Program-made: the position numbers and the translations under genes
Source of the DNA: Fonticula alba ATCC 38817
Taxonomy: Eukaryota; Protista; Nucleariida
NCBI GenBank assembly: GCA_000388065.2
Contig: KB932204.1
Strand: one strand, 5' to 3'
DNA length: 12,049 nucleotides
Shown here: one piece after another, positions 33-11,201 of the stretch
Numbering within the stretch: position 1 is the stretch's first letter
Layout: the number at the start of each line of letters is the position of its first letter
The notes under the pieces: generated by a model
Seen by the model: only the letters and a program-made list of their open reading frames with translations
Databases searched by the model: none
What the model was told of the DNA's origin: nothing

Positions 33-245
33 TCCTGCTTCGACTGCCAGTCCGGCCGGCCGGTGGCCGGCTCGATCACCTACGGCGTCGGTCTGTGTGC
101 CGCGTGCGCCGGGACCCACGACACCGGGAGCATGCCCATTTCCGAGGTCAAGCGCTTTTCGGCTGGCGACTGGACCGAAGAGCAGCTGCGTGCTTTCCGC
201 GTTGGCGGTGCCAACAACGCCCGTGAGTTCATCTCCAAGAATGGC
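33..245 (+). other. ArfGAP zinc-finger domain (C4 type), in-window portion
   Basis: SCFDCQSGRPVAGSITYGVGLCAACAGTHDTGSMPISEVKRFSAGDWTEEQLRAFRVGGANNAREFISKNG has exactly 16 residues between the two Cys pairs. Confidence 0.93.
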
Positions 246-3200
246 ATCCCCTCTGGCTCCCTCGGCCCGAGCCCCACCATTGTGGACGTTCTCTCCTTCT
301 ATACGAGCCCCACTCTCGAGGCGTACAAGGGGCATCTCGCCGGGGCTGTGGCCGCCGAGAGCACGGTGTGCGTCTCCCTCTTCATCCCATCGCCCCCAGC
401 CTGCCGGGCCCCCGCTTCCGCGCTCACCCCCTGCTGCCCTTTCATTGTCCGCTTGCCATCTGGCCGCCATGCCTGCCAGGCGCCCGGGTGCCCTGGTGCT
501 CGACCTCTCGGACCTCTCGGGCCTCGGTCAGAAGTCCTCCAAGCTCCAGGCCACCATGCCGGAGGATGATGACTTCGATTTTGACGGCAACTTCGATGTT
601 GCCTCGGTGATGGCCGGCAGTCGTGCCGGCGCCACCACCCCGGCCGCCGCTTCCCAGGCCCCTGCGAAGGTGCGCTTGCTTTTGGTCTTTCACCTGCTTT
701 CTCCCCGGGCCCGGGGCAAGGCCGGCAGCAAGGCAATGGCGCCAATCGTTCGACCAGCCCCCGCCCATGGGCCGGCCCCTGCTCACCACATGGTCGGTCT
801 CTCCCTCTTCCACCTTCCCTGGCGCGCCAATGTAGCCGGCTACTTCATCCTTTGCCCCCCGTCGGCCGGGGGGTGGTCTGGGTGCCGCGCGTGTGGGCAC
901 CGGCCTCGGGGCCACCCGCCTTGGGGCCACCCCCATGCCGGCGGCTTCCGCCTCAGCCAGCGCAGTGTCGCCCAGTGCTTCGGGGATTTCCTTCGATGAG
1001 CTTGAGCGCCAGGCCCGTCTGGAGGAGGCCCGCGCCAAGGAGCAGGCTGCCCAGCGCTTGGCCGAGTCGTCGGCCCTCCGGAGCGACTTCATGAGCGGCT
1101 CTTCGGCCACCACGGCTGCCCCGGTCGCTGCTGCGCCCACTTCCTTTAACAACCCCCCGTGCGTCCGACATTGCCCGCTCCTGCCGCCTCCCCCCTGCCC
1201 GGCATCTGATCTTGCCTCAAGGGGACAGGGGAAACGCCCCTCTCTCCTCTTCCTGCCCCCCCCCCCCGGCTGACTCATGCCCGGTGCTTGCCTCTCTCCT
1301 TCTCTCTCTCTCTCTCCCCGCGCTCCCTTGCCTCCATTTTGCGCCCCTCCCATCGCACAGTCCCCGCCATACGGACCTCAACGCCGAGAGCGAGAACCTG
1401 GCCAAGGCCAGCGCCATGGACCGTCTTGGTATGGGTGCTGGCCGCCTTGGGTTTGGCGCCCACGCTGCCGCTGCCCCGAAGAAGCCGGCCACCACATTCG
1501 AGCCGAGTGCGTACCGACACATGGCATCTTTCTGGGGCGGGGCCCATCTGCGTGCGCTTGACTTGTGTGTGTGTGTGTGTCCGTGTGTGTGTCCGTGTGT
1601 GTGTCCGTGTGTGTGTGCCCGTGTATGTGCCCGTGTGTGTGTGCCCGTGTGTGTGTGCCCGTGTGTGTGTGCCCGTGTGTGTGTGCCCGTGTGTGCCATC
1701 GCCTACTCACCCAAGACGGTCCTCGCCCGCGCGTCTGTCTTCAGTGTCCGATAATGATCGGCAGAAGTACAGCTCAGCCAAGAGCATTTCCTCGGATACC
1801 TTCTTCGGCCGCGACAACTGTGCGTTTCTGAGCCTCCCCATCTGTCCTTTCGGCGTTGCCACGTGTAAATCCTTCGGCGACTGACTTGCTTCCTTGCGAT
1901 CCTCCGATTACCCCTTCGCCCTCTTCTTTTGCCATCCGTGCGCAGACGGCGGCAACCAGTACCATGGCGGGGACTCCGGAAGGTATGGTGCCAATGGCTA
2001 TGGCTACTAAGCGCTGAGAAGACGCCGCAGACAGAGAGGGAGGGCGTGTGCGTGTGTGCGTGTGTGTTTGCGCACATGCGTGCGTGGCTCGGACCAGGGT
2101 CCTGAGCTTCAGGGAATACGTGCGGTGACCGTGAGAGCGAATGCCTGGACACAGTGCACCCAAGCACCCTTTCCTTTCTGCCCTTTTTTTCGCATGGGAT
2201 TCCCACAGCCATGAAGTCCCTTCCCCTACTCAGGGACACGGGAGCTCATGCCATGCCTTCAGTTCAAGAGAGATAGATGTTGCTGATGATCCTAGACGTA
2301 TGTGTGTATGAGTGCAGGGGGGGGGGGGGGGTGCATGTATTTGCCTGTTGCAGACGATACAGGACAGTAGCTATGTCCCTGGTTGACTTGGCGCGCGTCT
2401 GCCTGGGCGAGAGAGAGAGAGAGAGAGAGAGAGAGCTAGAGCAGGGGGCAGGGACAAGAAACAAGATGACGGAAAGAAAAGGCCCGAGAACAAATGACAG
2501 CGAGGACAGGGAGCTGAACATGCGGGTGACCGGATCTGGCAAGCCGTGCCAGGTGAAATATTGACTGTGCTGTCCCACCTCTTTCGGGCAACGTCTCAGC
2601 GCCGGGGGCGGCTACTACCCCTCGGACCCGACCGACCCGAGCCTCTACAGCCATGGCGGCTACAGTGGCAACCAGCATCACCCCATGTTCATGGACTCCG
2701 GCCGTGGCAGTGGCGCCGGCGGTGGCGGCGGGGGTGTGGGCTACAGCAGCAGCAGCAGCAGCGGCGGCGGCGCCGGCGCCGGCGCCGGCCCCGGCGGCCG
2801 CACTTCCTATGGGCTGTATGACAGCGGCACGGACAACTACTCCGGCGTCCGGTCGGATCCCTTCGGCTCGCACCAGCAACACCAGCAGCAGCAGCACAAT
2901 CATCATCACGGTGGCCAGGGCATGGGTGGCGGCCCCAATCATCCAGGCGCCGGGGAGCTGTATGTGTCGCCTTCCGGCAATGCCATGGGCTATCGCATGG
3001 GGGGCAGTGCGCAGCAGAACGACAGTTTGTACGCGAACTTCGTGGCGTCCCCGGGTGCCACGGCCACCATGGCATTTGAGACCGGCATGAACACGGTTAA
3101 GGAGTCCAGCAAGAAGGTATGCAAGTGGGCACCATCTGGGGTGATCAGGACCGGGCCTCAGACTTGCCAACAGGTGGGCGGGCTATATTTCCCTGAGTGA

Positions 3201-4751: not shown

Positions 4752-5879
4752 CGACGCTCGTTGCATGCCCGCAACCGCATGCCCGCAACCGCATGCCCGC
4801 AACCGCATGCCCGCAACCGCATGCCGATGCAGCATCCGGAGGACGGGCCTCCCTCAGGGAGGAAGAAGGCAGGAGAGGAGGGAGGGCCGCGAGTAGCATG
4901 GGAGGCAAAATCGCAGCAGCCGAGACTCTGCACCATCAGATTGATGTACACACACACACACACATACACACACAAAAGCTCAGCTTCGCACACATGCACA
5001 CGCACATGCACACGCACACCACCAACACATATACATATACGTATATATATATATATACATCACTCGCTCACGATCTTCTTCGAGGGCGAGGGCGGGGGTG
5101 GCGCTGACCGGCCAGCTTGCGACAGCCTCTCAGTGCCCGAGCGTACCGCGGGAGAGATGGACGCGCTGCCACCATTGGTTGACTGCTTGGCCGGCGGCAG
5201 GCGAGCCGAGGCCTTCGGACTGGAGCCTGCCCCGGGCGCCTTGCGAGGAGTGCCCGGCCCGGGAGGCGGGGTAATGGCCCGCGGACCGGCCGAGGCGGGC
5301 TTCTTGGAAGAGGCCCCACCACCATTGGTAAGGCCAGCCGGCGGAGAAGGAGTGGTCTGAGCACCGGGCCCGGTCTTCGATGCGCGCTTCGACGCACCCG
5401 GGCTGTTAGTGATGACGGAGCCGGCGCTGCTGCCACCGCGCGGGGAGGCCCCGCCGCCGTTCAGGCCATTGGCTGAATTGATCTTGGCCTTGCCGGCACC
5501 AAGCCCTGGGGCCAATGCCGCAGCGCGTGCCCCGGGGCCCTTGGGACTGGTTGAAAGGCCGCCGGCCGCCCCGCGACCCGATGACCGGCCCGCCGCCGCC
5601 CCGCGGGCCATGCGTCCCGATCCCATCGGCGGCGGGGTGCCCTCATAGGTGGGCGAGCTGTCCCCGGAAGATTGAGAAGCCGCCGCCACGGCCGCCGCCT
5701 CGCTGTTCAAGATCACCTGGGCAAAATGCTCAAACATCGACCCAGACGGGGCGGCCGGGTTGATCTTGCCGGCACGGCCGTCAGCGGCGGCGGCGGCTGG
5801 CCGCGACCCGCTCAACAGCGAGGGATCCATCCCCATGGCGCTGGTGCTGGAAGGCCTGGCGACGGCCGGTACCGAGGTC

Positions 5880-5959
<80 letters not shown>

Positions 5960-8471
5960 TTGCTGGGAGTAAAAAAGCGACAAGACAGGCTCATTGTAGG
6001 GATTGGCCTGGGCGCCTGCGGAGGAGGAAGCACCAGGCAATGGCCCGACCCCGGCGGCATGGGCAAGATGGGCCCCGGGCGGCCGAGAGGCAAGGCTGCC
6101 GAGAGGCCCGGGCCCCGGGCCGCCGGCCCGGATGCCGCCATACTGCGCGGCCATCGGCAGGAAACCGACATTCGGGTCCATGACAGCGCCGGGGCTGTGA
6201 GTGGCAGCCGCCGCCGCAGCCGCTGCAAGTGCCGGATTCGAGAGTATGGCCTTGGCACCGGGGCTGTGGATGTCATCGGCGCTGTCTCCGGTGATGGCAC
6301 CGGCGGCCTCGGCCGCGGCCGCGGCTGCCGCAATGGCCGCCACAGCCACCGAGGCGGCGGCCGAATTTGGTGGCAAAGCCGCGGCCGTGGCCATATCGTC
6401 GGACATGTCCCCCATGCTGGAACCACCGCCAAGGCCGGCCGTCAGATCCGCGGGAAAGCCTTTGGCCGCGGCGACACGCTCGCGGAATTGGCGCTCTTGG
6501 CGCTGGAGCTGGTGCTCTTTCTGAATGTGGGCCAGCTGCTGCTGCAGCAGGAGCTGATGGTGCTGGTACTGCTGGTCCTGTTGCGTTTGCAGATCAACCT
6601 TGGTGGAGTCCGGATCCAGGGACAAGGGTTGACCATCGGGCCCGGTGGGGTTGTTGATGGCGGCGACAGCCACGGCGGCGGCCGCCGCGGCGGCACTGTT
6701 CACCAACATCAGCCCGGTCAGGGCTCGCTGTGGCAGATGCGACCGCTGGTGCTCCTTCAGCGTGTCCGAGCGGCCGAACTGCTTGTTGCAGCCGGGCTCC
6801 GAGCAGACGTACGGCCGCTCGCCGGTGTGCGTGCGTAGATGCCTTGTCAGGTGCCCGGTTCGCGAGAAGCTCTTCTTGCAATCGCCATATGGGCACACAT
6901 GCCTTTGTTGCACATTGAAAGGGGGAGAGTTAGAGGAAAGGACCGGAGGGACCCCGTCGACCGATCGAGAGAGCGAAAGGAACGACCCGTGACAGGGTAG
7001 AGAGGCATCCACCACAGGGCAGCGACACGGAGGGGATGCCGGGCGGCGGNNNNNNNNNNNNNNNNNNNNNNNNNNNNNNNNNNNNNNNNNNNNNNNNNNN
7101 NNNNNNNNNNNNNNNNNNNNGGGGGTGCGTGGGGGTGGGGTTCCCGGGGGGGGCGGGACGTACTTGCGGGTGGGCGTGCTCGAAGACCGCGGCCCGGAAG
7201 AAGAGGGCGGTGTACTGACGGAGTCCTCATCCTCCTGGACGGTGCCGGCGCTCGGGAGGCCCATGTGATGATGGTGGTGGTTACCAAATGCATGGCCCGC
7301 CGCGAGGTGCCCCCCATGATGGAGTTGCTGCTGCTGCTGGTCATGGACACTGGGGTGGTGGAGATGCGGCTGGTGGAGCTGCTGGTGGAGCTGCGGATGG
7401 AGGGTGGACGTGAGGCTGGCGTCGCTGCCTTCCGGTCGAGTCGGAACCAGGGCAGGACGCTTCTTCGGCCGGTCAAGCCCGGCGGCGGACGGGTCATCCG
7501 ATTGGAAGGCATCCGAGGCGGAGCCCGACCGGTCGGCCTCGGTGGCGGAGTTGGCCCCACCAGCCGAGGAGACAGATCGCCGGCGCTTGGAGGCAGCCGC
7601 CCCGCTGCGTGACCCGCCACCCGTGTGCATTGACAATTGCATTTGCAATGCCTGCATTTGCTGCTGCGCATCGCCGGAAAGCTTGGAAGCAGCGGCGGCC
7701 ACGGCCGCCGAGCTGGCGCCACCCTTGCCGGCGCCATTGGCAGCGGCCCCGCGCAGGGGCTGGTGCTGTTGCACGAGGGCCGCCGCCGCCGCCGCCGCAT
7801 TCACCAGACCGCCGACCAGGTCCGATCTCGAATCCAGGTGAATGCGCACGTGCCGAGTCAATTCGTCACACCGGCTGAAGCGCTTGTGGCAATTGGGGAA
7901 GGTGCATGCGTGTGGCCGCTCGCCGGTGTGCGTGCGAATGTGCCGCGTCAGGTGCTCATGGCGGATGAAGGTCTTCTCGCAACCGGCATGGGTGCAACGG
8001 AATTGCCGGTTGGTGGGGGGGGCCTTACGCCGGGTGGCATCGGCCGACTCGCCGGCCGAGCCGGCCTGCTTGGACGCCTCACTTGCTCCGGTAGCAGTAG
8101 CTGCTGCTGCTGCTGCTGCTGTGCCCGCGGCCGAGTTGAGCGACGCCGAGGAAGAGGCACTGGTCGGCGCGAGGGTTGTCGATGCTGAGGATGACAAGGA
8201 TGCTGTCGAGGAGGAGGAGAGGCCCGGGGCACTGGCGAGGCCATTCCCGCTGGCAGCCGCCTTACGAGGGGCCACAGGAGCCGCCACCTTGCGATGAGTC
8301 AGCGCCGCGGGTGACATCCCCGGCGCACCGCCACCGGCGCCGCCTCCGGAAGAAGGGCTGGGAGAAATGTTAACTGTGACACTGGAGGAGGAGGCCGAGA
8401 GACCGGCGGCGGCCGCCGCCGCGGCCGCTGCAGCCGCTGCCGCCCCGATGGAGTGCTGCTGCTGCTGTTGT

Positions 8472-8525
<54 letters not shown>

Positions 8526-8696
8526 TGTCCCGAGGGACTCATGCCGGCGGCGCTGCTGGTCAGGTGCCCCAGCGGTGACTGGGACATGATACCGCCGCCC
8601 AGCGGAGATCCCTGCATGTGAGCCCCGGGTTGCTGGTGTTGGGAAAAGTAGCTGGGAGCGAAGATGGGTGTGGAGAAGACCGCTGTGGCGGGATGG

Positions 8697-8732
<36 letters not shown>

Positions 8733-9739
8733 GGTTGTTGTTGCTGTTGCTGTTGTTGCTGTTGAGGCGCCGGAGATTGTTGGCCAGGGGGCAGGGTGCC
8801 GGGCTGCGGCGTGGACCCGAGGCCGGCCTGCTGCGGGCTGGCCAAAGACCCAAGGGTGCCGGTGCCCGAGGAGTTGGCGGTGGCGGCGGCGGCGGCAGCG
8901 GCGGCGGCGGCGGCGGCCTGCGTTGACGCGTGATATTGGAGCAGGTGGCTGTTAAAGACAGATGAGTCTCCGCCGATCAGATGCGAGGTGAGATGGGCCT
9001 GGGCAGCTGCGTTTGCGGCCGCGACGGCTGCATTATTCGGGCTCTGGTGCAGGGCCATCGGTATCCCCTCAAGACCGGGGACCATCCCGCGGAAAGTTGA
9101 CGTAAAGCCGAAGGGTGACTGCCCGCCGGCAAGGACCTGATGCAGGGGGTTGGCCTGGGAGTCGCCGCTGGCCGGCGATCCGACAACATGCGCATGGCCC
9201 ACAGCCTGAGTCGACGGGTGGGGATGGTGTGACAGACTGGCCCCGAGGGTGGACCCGAGGACTGAGTGGTGCCCGTGAAGACCGGTCCCGCCGCCGACGC
9301 CGCCGGGGCCCAGTTGCAAATGGCCGCCGCCGGTCTGTGCGGATGGGTGGTGGAGGACACCATGCGATGGTGGCGGCAAGCCGTGGTGGCCCAGGTGCTG
9401 GCCATTGTTGGAAAGCGAAGTGTCGAGCAGGGATCCGGTCGTGTGGTAGGCTGCCGGAGTTGACTGGCCGCCGGACATGAAGGGCGCAATCAGCTGCGGC
9501 TGGTGCTGGGAGGACAGGCCGGCTGGCAAAGCCCCTTGTGACAGGGCCGAGATGGCATGCGGTAGGGCCAGGCCGGAGGACAGGGCATCCTGCTGGCCGC
9601 CGGATGCCTGCTGCGGCCCAGCCAGGGCAGTCGGGCCACTGGCGCCGGGGAACTCATGCCCGGCATGCAAGTGCCCGGCAGCCGTGCCCTGATGGCCACT
9701 GCCATGGTGATGGAGGTGGTGCCCTCCGCCGGGGGACAT
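4098..9739 (-). CDS. Large low-complexity C2H2 zinc-finger transcription factor with two finger pairs (CreA/Mig1/EGR-KLF-like). Exons 9739-7164, 6902-5072, 4493-4098 (4803 nt, 1600 aa plus stop if Met at 9739)
   Basis: Long open frame with four C-x4-C..H-x3-H fingers, TGERP linkers, and polyQ, polyA and His tracts. Intron 7163-6903 has a GTACGT donor, CTAAC branch point and CAAAG acceptor (phase 2). Intron 5071-4494 has a GTGAGC donor, CTGAC branch point, pyrimidine tract and CCAG acceptor (phase 0). The start codon is uncertain because an acceptor lies just upstream at 9756. Confidence 0.88.
4665..4748 (+). repeat. (TG)n/(CG)n microsatellite in the last intron of the zinc-finger gene
   Basis: Direct reading. 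Confidence 0.9.
4763..4825 (+). repeat. 14-bp tandem minisatellite (GCATGCCCGCAACC) x4.5
   Basis: Four perfect units at 4763-4818 plus a 7-nt partial unit. Confidence 0.93.
4947..5058 (+). repeat. (CA)n and (TA)n microsatellite cluster at the 5' end of the last intron
   Basis: Direct reading, including GTATATATATATATATAC at 5041-5058. Confidence 0.8.
5882..5965 (-). repeat. Coding CAG/CAA repeat, Q28
   Basis: 84 nt of CTG/TTG triplets on the plus strand, in frame with the zinc-finger ORF. Confidence 0.92.
6737..6901 (-). other. C2H2 finger pair 2
   Basis: [55 protein letters not shown]. Confidence 0.93.
6903..7163 (-). other. Spliceosomal intron containing the first assembly gap
   Basis: CGCAA/GTACGT donor, CTCTAAC branch point, pyrimidine tract and CAAAG/G acceptor. 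Splicing restores TPTRK-HVC directly before finger 3. Confidence 0.85.
7050..7120. other. Assembly gap (71 N)
   Basis: Run of N flanked by G-rich sequence. Confidence 0.99.
7838..8002 (-). other. C2H2 finger pair 1 (CreA/Mig1-type recognition helices)
   Basis: [55 protein letters not shown]. Compare CreA/Mig1 RLEHQTRH..HTGEKPHAC.FPGC.KRFSRSDELTRH (from memory). Confidence 0.93.
8456..8527 (-). repeat. Coding CAG/CAA repeat, Q24
   Basis: 72 nt, in frame. Confidence 0.92.
8699..8764 (-). repeat. Coding CAG/CAA repeat, Q10-P-Q11
   Basis: In frame, direct reading. Confidence 0.92.
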
Positions 9740-9810: not shown

Positions 9811-10225
9811 ACGAGTTAAGAGGGCGTGAGTGAATGCACGGAGAAGGGGGAGAGAAGGAAGGGGAGGGGGGACAAGAGGAGGAGCCGATTGGCGCGCACA
9901 AAGAGACGAGAAGAGCGACTTGGCTCCGATGGAAGGGGGAAGGGGCGGAGAGGAGAAGAGGGTGGACGGAAGATCCGAGGGCCTGAGATGGGGTTCACCG
10001 AGAAGGAAGGGTATCAGCAGCCGAAGTGAAGCCGGGAAGGGCGGTCGAGCAATTAAGAAGCACACACCGGCGGCAGGGGGACCACCGGGGCAGAGGAAAG
10101 TGGAATAGATGGATGGGTGGGGCTCGGGTTCCCTCCGGGGTGGGAGCAACTCGGCTTGAGGGAGGGGGAGGGGGGCGAGGGATATGGAGAGAGAGATATA
10201 TATGTAGAGAGAGAGGGGGGGGGGG

Positions 10226-10606
10226 NNNNNNNNNNNNNNNNNNNNNNNNNNNNNNNNNNNNNNNNNNNNNNNNNNNNNNNNNNNNNNNNNNNNNNNNNNN
10301 NNNNNNNNNNNNNNNNNNNNNNNNNNNNNNNNNNNNNNNNNNNNNNNNNNNNNNNNNNNNNNNNNNNNNNNNNNNNNNNNNNNNNNNNNNNNNNNNNNNN
10401 NNNNNNNNNNNNNNNNNNNNNNNNNNNNNNNNNNNNNNNNNNNNNNNNNNNNNNNNNNNNNNNNNNNNNNNNNNNNNNNNNNNNNNNNNNNNNNNNNNNN
10501 NNNNNNNNNNNNNNNNNNNNNNNNNNNNNNNNNNNNNNNNNNNNNNNNNNNNNNNNNNNNNNNNNNNNNNNNNNNNNNNNNNNNNNNNNNNNNNNNNNNN
10601 NNNNNN
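10226..10606. other. Assembly gap (381 N)
   Basis: Run of N flanked by G and C runs. Confidence 0.99.
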
Positions 10607-10656
10607 CCCCGCCCCCACCCCCGCGAAGGCCGAGCTGCGCCCAGGATCGCACTCAT

Positions 10657-10685
10657 CACACACACACACACACACACACACACAC
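10657..10685 (+). repeat. (CA)n microsatellite
   Basis: Direct reading. Confidence 0.9.
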
Positions 10686-11201
10686 CGCCCCCGGCCTCCT
10701 CCACCCCTCGGGAACCCTCGCCGGAGGGGGGGAGGTTGCGCCAGCACGATCGCCCGGCGCGGCCACCCAGGTCCGATCGAGCCGAGGCGCCACCAGCACC
10801 GACCGGGACGGGTCCAAGCGGGCTTTCTGGACCGGGCCAGCCGCCCGGCTAGGAAGGAATGCACATGGGCCGGGGCGGGGGCGGGGGGGCGGCGGCGCAC
10901 CCGCCCACGCCCACGCCCACTCAGAGACCCCTGGGGACGGGTGCTGAGACCCATTTCCGGGGTGCGGAGAACGAATGAGCGCACCAGCACCCGGGTAACA
11001 GCTGTGCGCGCACGCCCACACAGACATGCCCTCCTGGGCTCCGGTGCGCGATCGGGCCAGGTAGGCGCGATCAGTGCCGGTTCACGGCAGGCCCCCCCCC
11101 CCCCCCCCGCACACTTCCCCAAGGGCGAGACGATCGGCGCGGGGGAGGGGCCCGGGGGACGCCCCCCACGCCCCCCGCACCCGCACCACCCCCCCGGCGC
11201 G

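Follow-up and report, generated by a model that had tools for sequence, protein, structure and literature searches.

Whether a Glo3-type protein can be kept in use once it has lost the arginine finger, whose mutation abolishes ArfGAP activity (PMC6724607; PMC6737914), and what it might then do, is the question raised by a gene at the start of a 12,049-nt stretch of Fonticula alba DNA (hereafter, the window). The original prediction, made from the letters of the window, held that this gene encodes a Glo3/ArfGAP2-3 homologue with an aspartate in place of the finger, that its splicing, open frame and C-terminal modules are intact, and that its product is a catalytically dead scaffold or competitor stabilising Arf-GTP coats. 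We have examined the family to which the protein belongs, the authenticity of the aspartate codon, the state of the remaining conserved positions and the fate of the linker and tail, and have weighed the explanations that these results leave for the function of the protein.

The gene product belongs to the Glo3/ArfGAP2-3 family

The window has a GC content of about 65% and begins within a eukaryotic gene of several exons, on the plus strand. The encoded domain matched the Pfam ArfGap profile (PF01412) at E = 2.8e-14, scoring 53.6 bits where the cut-off is 28.7; the initial ~15 positions of the profile fall upstream of the window. In a phmmer comparison with PDB sequences the top match was yeast Glo3 (7jtz, E = 6.8e-15), followed by ArfGAP2, ArfGAP3, ArfGAP1 and SMAP, and the ranking by fold agreed on the subfamily, with Glo3 first and ArfGAP2 next. 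The gene model in turn aligned over its whole length (residues 2-357) with fungal Glo3 proteins (for example, with E = 2e-32 and 33% identity), and a multiple alignment showed that the order of its elements is collinear with that of 15 Glo3-type proteins of fungi, plants and stramenopiles. The order shared by all of them comprises the GAP domain, the Y-T-S...Y-K helix, an acidic D-D-D-F stretch, G-L-G-A-basic units, the I-S-F-D-E-L-E-R helix, R-L-G-F-G and the Glo3 regulatory motif (GRM). Taken together, the PDB ranking, the fold ranking and the collinear alignment bear out the proposed homology and, judged by its sequence, the gene product descends from the Glo3/ArfGAP2-3 family.

When 1.84 billion cluster representatives were scanned in full with HMMER, no true relative above ~43% identity emerged. 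A seeded alignment search with a 500-aa fungal Glo3 as its first row recovered canonical fungal Glo3 proteins only and no close relative, and the clusters retrieved from the ESM Atlas were all generic ArfGAP ones. A look-up of contigs encoding an ORF of the window gave no record. Since the searches did not bring up the window's own protein or any close relative, the source proteome appears to be absent from the protein databases searched. The single locus found in a metagenome scan was AT-rich and unrelated, and was judged spurious. Four proteins with the top library scores were also rejected as homologues: P0001, P0002 and P0004 are giant proteins in which T-W-T-F-T-L-N units recur, and the repeats of P0095 are of a CxxCH, cytochrome-like kind. 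The three giant proteins, of 2087-4788 aa and with 6-21 tandem repeats containing A-Y-G-T-I-x-V-T-G-x-Q-W-T-F-T-L-N, score above every true ArfGAP when compared with the exon, a coincidence of composition and motif that may mislead automated annotation.

The gene is spliced and expressed

The six exons within the window (Table 1) code for 377 residues. The structure of the gene was compared with a spliced RNA contig, X10, which aligned in pieces covering positions 31-367, 480-667, 834-1158 and 1361-1506, with GT..AG joints between them, and continued at 1745. At its 5′ end, X10 has 184 nt that lie upstream of the window, and the last 30 of these are in frame, reading ...A-T-L-L-G-H-S-A-F-E before S-C-F-D-C; the exon at 33-367 is therefore not the first of the gene. 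All five donors (368, 670, 1159, 1507 and 1820) read GTGCG[TC] and lack an A at +4. Canonical GTGCG[TC]...AG sites delimit all five introns in the window, and four of the joints were found in use in RNA. The remaining joint, 1819/1946, would restore the sequence G-R-D-N-Y of canonical Glo3 proteins. If intron 5 were retained, translation would meet a stop at 1882-1884, 21 codons on, so that the protein ends soon after its first ISS motif in either case. X10 contains 422 nt beyond position 1506, and the 3′ UTR probably extends to about 2290. A hidden alternative exon of canonical sequence was ruled out, as the transcript runs straight from its upstream exon into position 33 and the window contains no second ISS motif.

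Table 1. Features of the gene and of the remainder of the window, with the evidence for each
Feature	Positions	Strand	Evidence
Exon, ArfGAP zinc finger and helical extension (Y-T-S-P...Y-K)	33-367	+	Pfam PF01412, Glo3 7jtz, RNA X10
Intron 1, GTGCGT...AG	368-479	+	joint 367/480 in RNA contig X10
Exon 2, linker with acidic D-D-D-F-D-F-D stretch	480-669	+	RNA X10 piece 480-667, cut +2; aligns with D-D-F-F of Glo3-type proteins
Intron 2, GTGCGC...AG	670-835	+	joint in RNA contig, cut +2
Exon 3, BoCCS-like linker, two G-L-G-A-x-R units (no Lys) and I-S-F-D-E-L-E-R helix	836-1158	+	RNA X10, alignment
Intron 3, GTGCGT...AG	1159-1360	+	joint 1158/1361 in RNA contig
Exon 4, R-L-G-F-G motif	1361-1506	+	RNA X10 piece 1361-1506, alignment
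Intron 4, GTGCGT...AG	1507-1744	+	loose RNA contig end past 1506 reads sequence starting at 1745
14-nt tandem repeat inside intron 4	1569-1695		TRF
Exon 5, Glo3 regulatory motif, first ISS repeat K-Y-S-S-A-K-S-I-S-S-D-T-F-F-G-R-D-N	1745-1819	+	motif scan, alignment
Intron 5, GTGCGT...AG	1820-1945	+	deduced from restored G-R-D-N-Y
Last coding exon, 21-residue Gly/Tyr-rich tail, stop TAA at 2008-2010	1946-2010	+	gene model
1559-codon open frame, poly-Q/poly-A-rich	5060-9739	-	Pfam zf-C2H2
Assembly gap interrupting the 1559-codon frame	7050-7120		
Assembly gap, run of 381 N	10226-10606		

Expression was also apparent from public sequencing data. Four RNA runs contain about half of the words sampled from the region, which is approximately the exonic share, and together with X10, which matched with 0 differences, they confirm that the gene is spliced, as had been proposed, and that it is expressed. 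Matching DNA was present in public metagenome runs from soil, sediment, compost, sludge and gut.

With regard to the rest of the window, the tandem repeat in intron 4 consists of 9.5 copies of the unit GTGTGTGTGTGCCC. The long open frame on the minus strand encodes C2H2 zinc fingers in two pairs that lie apart, and a comparison of its first 330 residues with 5.8 billion proteins revealed no homologue. The second assembly gap is placed between (GT)n and (GA)n microsatellites, and an apparent dip in GC content at 10001-11000 is due to this run of N. No Rfam family or tRNA was found when the window was scanned.

The arginine-finger position is occupied by a genuine aspartate

Translation of positions 33-362 gives C-F-D-C, 16 residues, C-A-A-C and then A-G-T-H-D, and the codon at the CX4R position (120-122, plus strand) is GAC, for Asp. 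When the domain was aligned with yeast Glo3 (phmmer against 7jtz), its H-D fell on the H-R of Glo3, placing the Asp in the column of the finger residue Arg59. The predicted motif, CX2CX16CX2C-AGTH-D, was thus recovered by translation, by alignment to PF01412 and by alignment to Glo3. The Arg codon nearest to GAC is CGC, two changes away, in agreement with the earlier statement that at least two substitutions separate it from any Arg codon. To put this replacement in the context of the family, we used 150 homologous domain alignments, that is, the best library matches once the four spurious proteins (P0001, P0002, P0004 and P0095) had been removed. The finger column was 99% Arg, and the only true ArfGAP domain without Arg among these best 150 matches was that of P0116, which has Gln.

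Sequencing reads and contigs were compared with positions 1-1540 of the window, and public runs were looked up for positions 1-2400. The RNA contig X10 (1602 nt), built from RNA data of the source organism, covered 31-367 with 0 differences, and a DNA contig (X5), from a run of 2025 that carries a second organism label, covered 21-1260, again with 0 differences. These matches indicate that the Asp codon is genomic, that it is transcribed unedited and that its exon is present in the mature message. With the RNA and two DNA sources identical, sequencing error and RNA editing were ruled out as the origin of the Asp, and the earlier claim that GAC is not a base error, for which confirmation in reads and RNA-seq had been proposed, holds. 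A further RNA run (X22, from 2026 and under the second organism label) gave 0 reads in a sample of only 6%.

The finger loop is rebuilt on a retained zinc-finger scaffold

Conservation was then evaluated in a curated alignment of 50 rows (the query and 49 homologues). Results showed that nine of the 25 columns conserved at 90% or more are changed in the query, whereas the 49 homologues average 0.55 such changes and never exceed 3. Most of the eight near-invariant replacements that accompany the loss of the finger sit in or around the finger loop. The Trp of P-x-W (99% conserved) is Ala; the G-V-H that follows the finger (100%, 89% and 97%) reads S-M-P; and Glu stands for a Phe (91%), Arg for the Ser of V-R-S (99%), Gly for the Asp of L-D-x-W (99%) and Ala for the Asn of G-G-N (99%). 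In addition, A-A replaces L-D within the second CxxC. The losses noted earlier in the neighbourhood of the finger, such as those of the Trp of P-x-W-A-S, of the invariant Gly and of L-D, are therefore real. In view of the ASAP3-Arf6 structure and of mutagenesis of ASAP1, the altered residues would lie on the face of the domain that contacts Arf.

The query keeps the remaining 16 of the 25 conserved columns. The four Cys (residues C2, C5, C22 and C25 in the translated exon, in columns that are 99-100% Cys), Y-G-V, the His, I-S-x-V, the Trp, Q-L, G-G and the helical extension are retained, so that the homologue alignment also confirmed the proposed retention of the zinc ligands and of these family residues. 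An AlphaFold2 model of the domain, which is driven by the alignment of canonical homologues, reached a pLDDT of 88.8 and had the GAP domain of yeast Glo3 as its best PDB match (TM 0.83, rmsd 2.1 Å). In a maximum-likelihood tree the terminal branch of the query was the longest, with 1.38 changes per site versus a median of 0.25, and that of P0116 was the second (1.07). The combination of a preserved scaffold and a rebuilt finger region is to be expected where a domain has lost catalysis but is still needed for its structure or for other contacts, and it does not resemble uniform decay. Overall, the sequence predicts a catalytically dead GAP domain, as originally proposed, with a genuine Asp and eight other near-invariant residues replaced.

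The linker has lost its lysines and the tail is shortened

In yeast Glo3, the lysine clusters K233-235 and K251/252/255 of the BoCCS region bind an acidic patch of β′-COP (PMC9960064). In the BoCCS-like linker of the query, the G-L-G-A-basic units and the following helix can be recognised in the alignment, and the 45 residues that precede the I-D-F-D-type helix contain 0 Lys and 4 Arg. The same span in 118 Glo3-type proteins has on average 6.7 Lys and 3.1 Arg (9.8 basic residues).

The GRM of the query consists of one near-canonical repeat of 19 residues, K-Y-S-S-A-K-S-I-S-S-D-T-F-F-G-R-D-N-Y, which is close to the consensus and nearly identical to the versions of fungi, plants and stramenopiles. 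Two ISS repeats are present in 105 of the 118 Glo3-type proteins and only one in the query; a scan of the six frames did not find a second ISS motif anywhere in the window. After the first repeat the query continues for just 24 residues, with a Gly/Tyr-rich end, whereas all 118 comparison proteins have at least 45 (mean 91). According to the 15-protein alignment, the second ISS repeat and the ~70 residues usually found after it, with the C-terminal segment, are absent; in yeast Glo3 this segment is an amphipathic helix (PMC6737914). The C-terminal modules, expected to be intact, are thus so only in part: the first ISS repeat is near-canonical, and the second repeat, the C-terminal helix region and the linker lysines are gone.

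Comparison with other ArfGAP proteins

The query has its best matches in sequence and fold (7jtz, 2p57, 2crw and 5nzs) in the COPI-associated subfamily of yeast Glo3 and mammalian ArfGAP2/ArfGAP3, and shares with these proteins the collinear order of elements. Unlike them, it has Asp for the finger and eight other near-invariant changes, lacks clusters resembling K233-235 or K251/252/255, contains one ISS repeat instead of two, extends 24 residues after it instead of at least 45 and has no C-terminal helix region. AGFG1/2 (Hrb/RIP) also display the ArfGAP zinc-finger fold and appeared as weak PDB matches (2d9l and 2olm), but they belong to another subfamily, carry FG repeats and have no GRM. 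AGFG1/2 are not known to have GAP activity and would use the fold non-catalytically, and they still carry the finger Arg. The other Arg-less domain, that of P0116 (261 aa, from a public assembly), resembles the query in its long branch. However, P0116 has the family residues W, G, H, S and D in place near the finger; it lacks an ISS motif, ends in a hydrophobic C-terminus and is not of the Glo3 type.

A probable non-catalytic Glo3 derivative and its alternatives

On this evidence, the gene most likely encodes a natural, non-catalytic "pseudo-GAP". In a more complete form, the explanation that we favour with moderate confidence, reading it from the sequence, is that of a Glo3 derivative maintained by selection, which would be non-catalytic and impaired in Arf binding and would work through its linker and tail. 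The loss of the Arg finger together with the eight other changes is predicted to leave the protein unable to stimulate GTP hydrolysis on Arf; the rebuilt surface of the finger loop would probably bind Arf-GTP poorly; and the disappearance of the linker Lys may have weakened the binding of coatomer. Selection would meanwhile have retained the zinc-finger scaffold together with the helical extension and, further along, the acidic stretch, the I-S-F-D-E-L-E-R helix, R-L-G-F-G and the first GRM repeat. The role of such a protein would most likely be that of an accessory or regulator of COPI-type traffic, through contacts of the linker and tail with coatomer, cargo or SNAREs and not with Arf. In short, from what is directly observed, namely the sequence with its pattern of losses, its expression and splicing and its place in the family, we infer loss of activity, weakened binding of both Arf and coatomer, and a retained function.

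The mechanism first put forward, in which a catalytically dead protein competes for the GAP niche on Arf-GTP/COPI and stabilises the coats, agrees with the Glo3-family architecture of the query, its retained GRM repeat and some basic residues in the linker. It also has an engineered precedent in the GAP-dead Glo3 R59K, likewise a Glo3-type protein without a functional finger, which occupies the niche unproductively in yeast (PMC6737914). However, a stabiliser of this kind needs an intact Arf-binding surface. Apart from its finger, R59K has the Arf interface, the BoCCS region and both GRM repeats intact, whereas in the query eight further near-invariant residues are replaced, the BoCCS basic residues are lost or weakened and one ISS repeat is missing. 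With the Lys clusters gone and the finger-loop surface rebuilt, stable docking on Arf-GTP is doubtful. Moreover, R59K is dominant-negative lethal in yeast, a toxicity for which the basic residues of BoCCS must be present and the GRM functional (Arakel et al. 2019; PMC6737914), so that a natural protein docking on Arf-GTP without hydrolysis would be expected to be harmful. We consequently consider this mechanism improbable. Loss of Arf engagement is more likely than Arf-GTP docking, and the eroded finger loop, the lost Lys clusters and the shortened tail fit better with a protein that does not engage Arf productively.

We give equally little credence to a protein that would still work as an Arf GAP, its finger being supplied by another residue in cis, such as the Arg of V-K-R-F or of Q-S-G-R-P, or by a partner in trans, for instance coatomer. 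The query does have Arg at two sites, one of them Ser in 99% and the other Asn in 76% of the family, and enzymes of other families are known in which a catalytic residue has moved, which counts for this possibility. Against it, the W, the G-V-H, the S, the D and the N of G-G-N (conserved at 97-100%, the Val at 89%) are replaced as well, which would be unexpected had the geometry of Arf docking been kept, and no ArfGAP with a relocated finger was found in the literature searched.

Decay deserves somewhat more weight, although it too appears unlikely. In that case, the gene would be an expressed but functionless duplicate of a canonical Glo3 gene located elsewhere in the genome, that is, a transcribed pseudogene in the making. 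The query has the longest branch in the tree and no relative above ~43% identity among the cluster representatives scanned, and its loss of catalytic residues, Lys clusters, second ISS repeat and C-terminal region could equally mark a paralogue nearing loss. The open frame has to be read with caution as well, because GC-rich DNA leaves frames open by chance and wrong-frame ORFs of 300 aa occur in this same 65% GC DNA. On the other hand, the canonical sites of all five introns in the window and the use of four joints in RNA speak against a decaying copy. The same holds for the presence of the transcript in four RNA runs, for the retention of the four zinc ligands, the His and 16 of the 25 conserved columns despite 1.38 changes per site, and for a 19-residue GRM that is almost unchanged. 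This uneven retention, with zinc ligands and GRM kept and the finger loop eroded, argues for constraint over free decay and thus for the selected, non-catalytic derivative.

Implications for the Glo3 niche

For kinases, phosphatases and Rho/Ras GAP-like proteins, pseudo-enzymes are an established phenomenon. A natural, expressed member of the ArfGAP family without its finger was not found in the literature searched. As the lethality of R59K depends on BoCCS and GRM, and the query has lost the Lys clusters and one ISS repeat but kept the first repeat, the gene would represent a natural separation-of-function allele in which the roles of the Glo3 linker and GRM can be considered apart from GTP hydrolysis.

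A further implication depends on whether this gene is the only Glo3/ArfGAP2-3 orthologue of the organism, its COPI coat being run without a catalytic Glo3-type GAP, which we think rather unlikely. Were that the case, all GTP hydrolysis on Arf would be left to ArfGAP1-type or other GAPs and the Glo3 niche would be served by a non-catalytic protein. In yeast, the Glo3 niche is essential for GTP hydrolysis on γ-Arf1. A sole Glo3-type gene of this kind would therefore challenge the universal need for hydrolysis in the γ-Arf niche.
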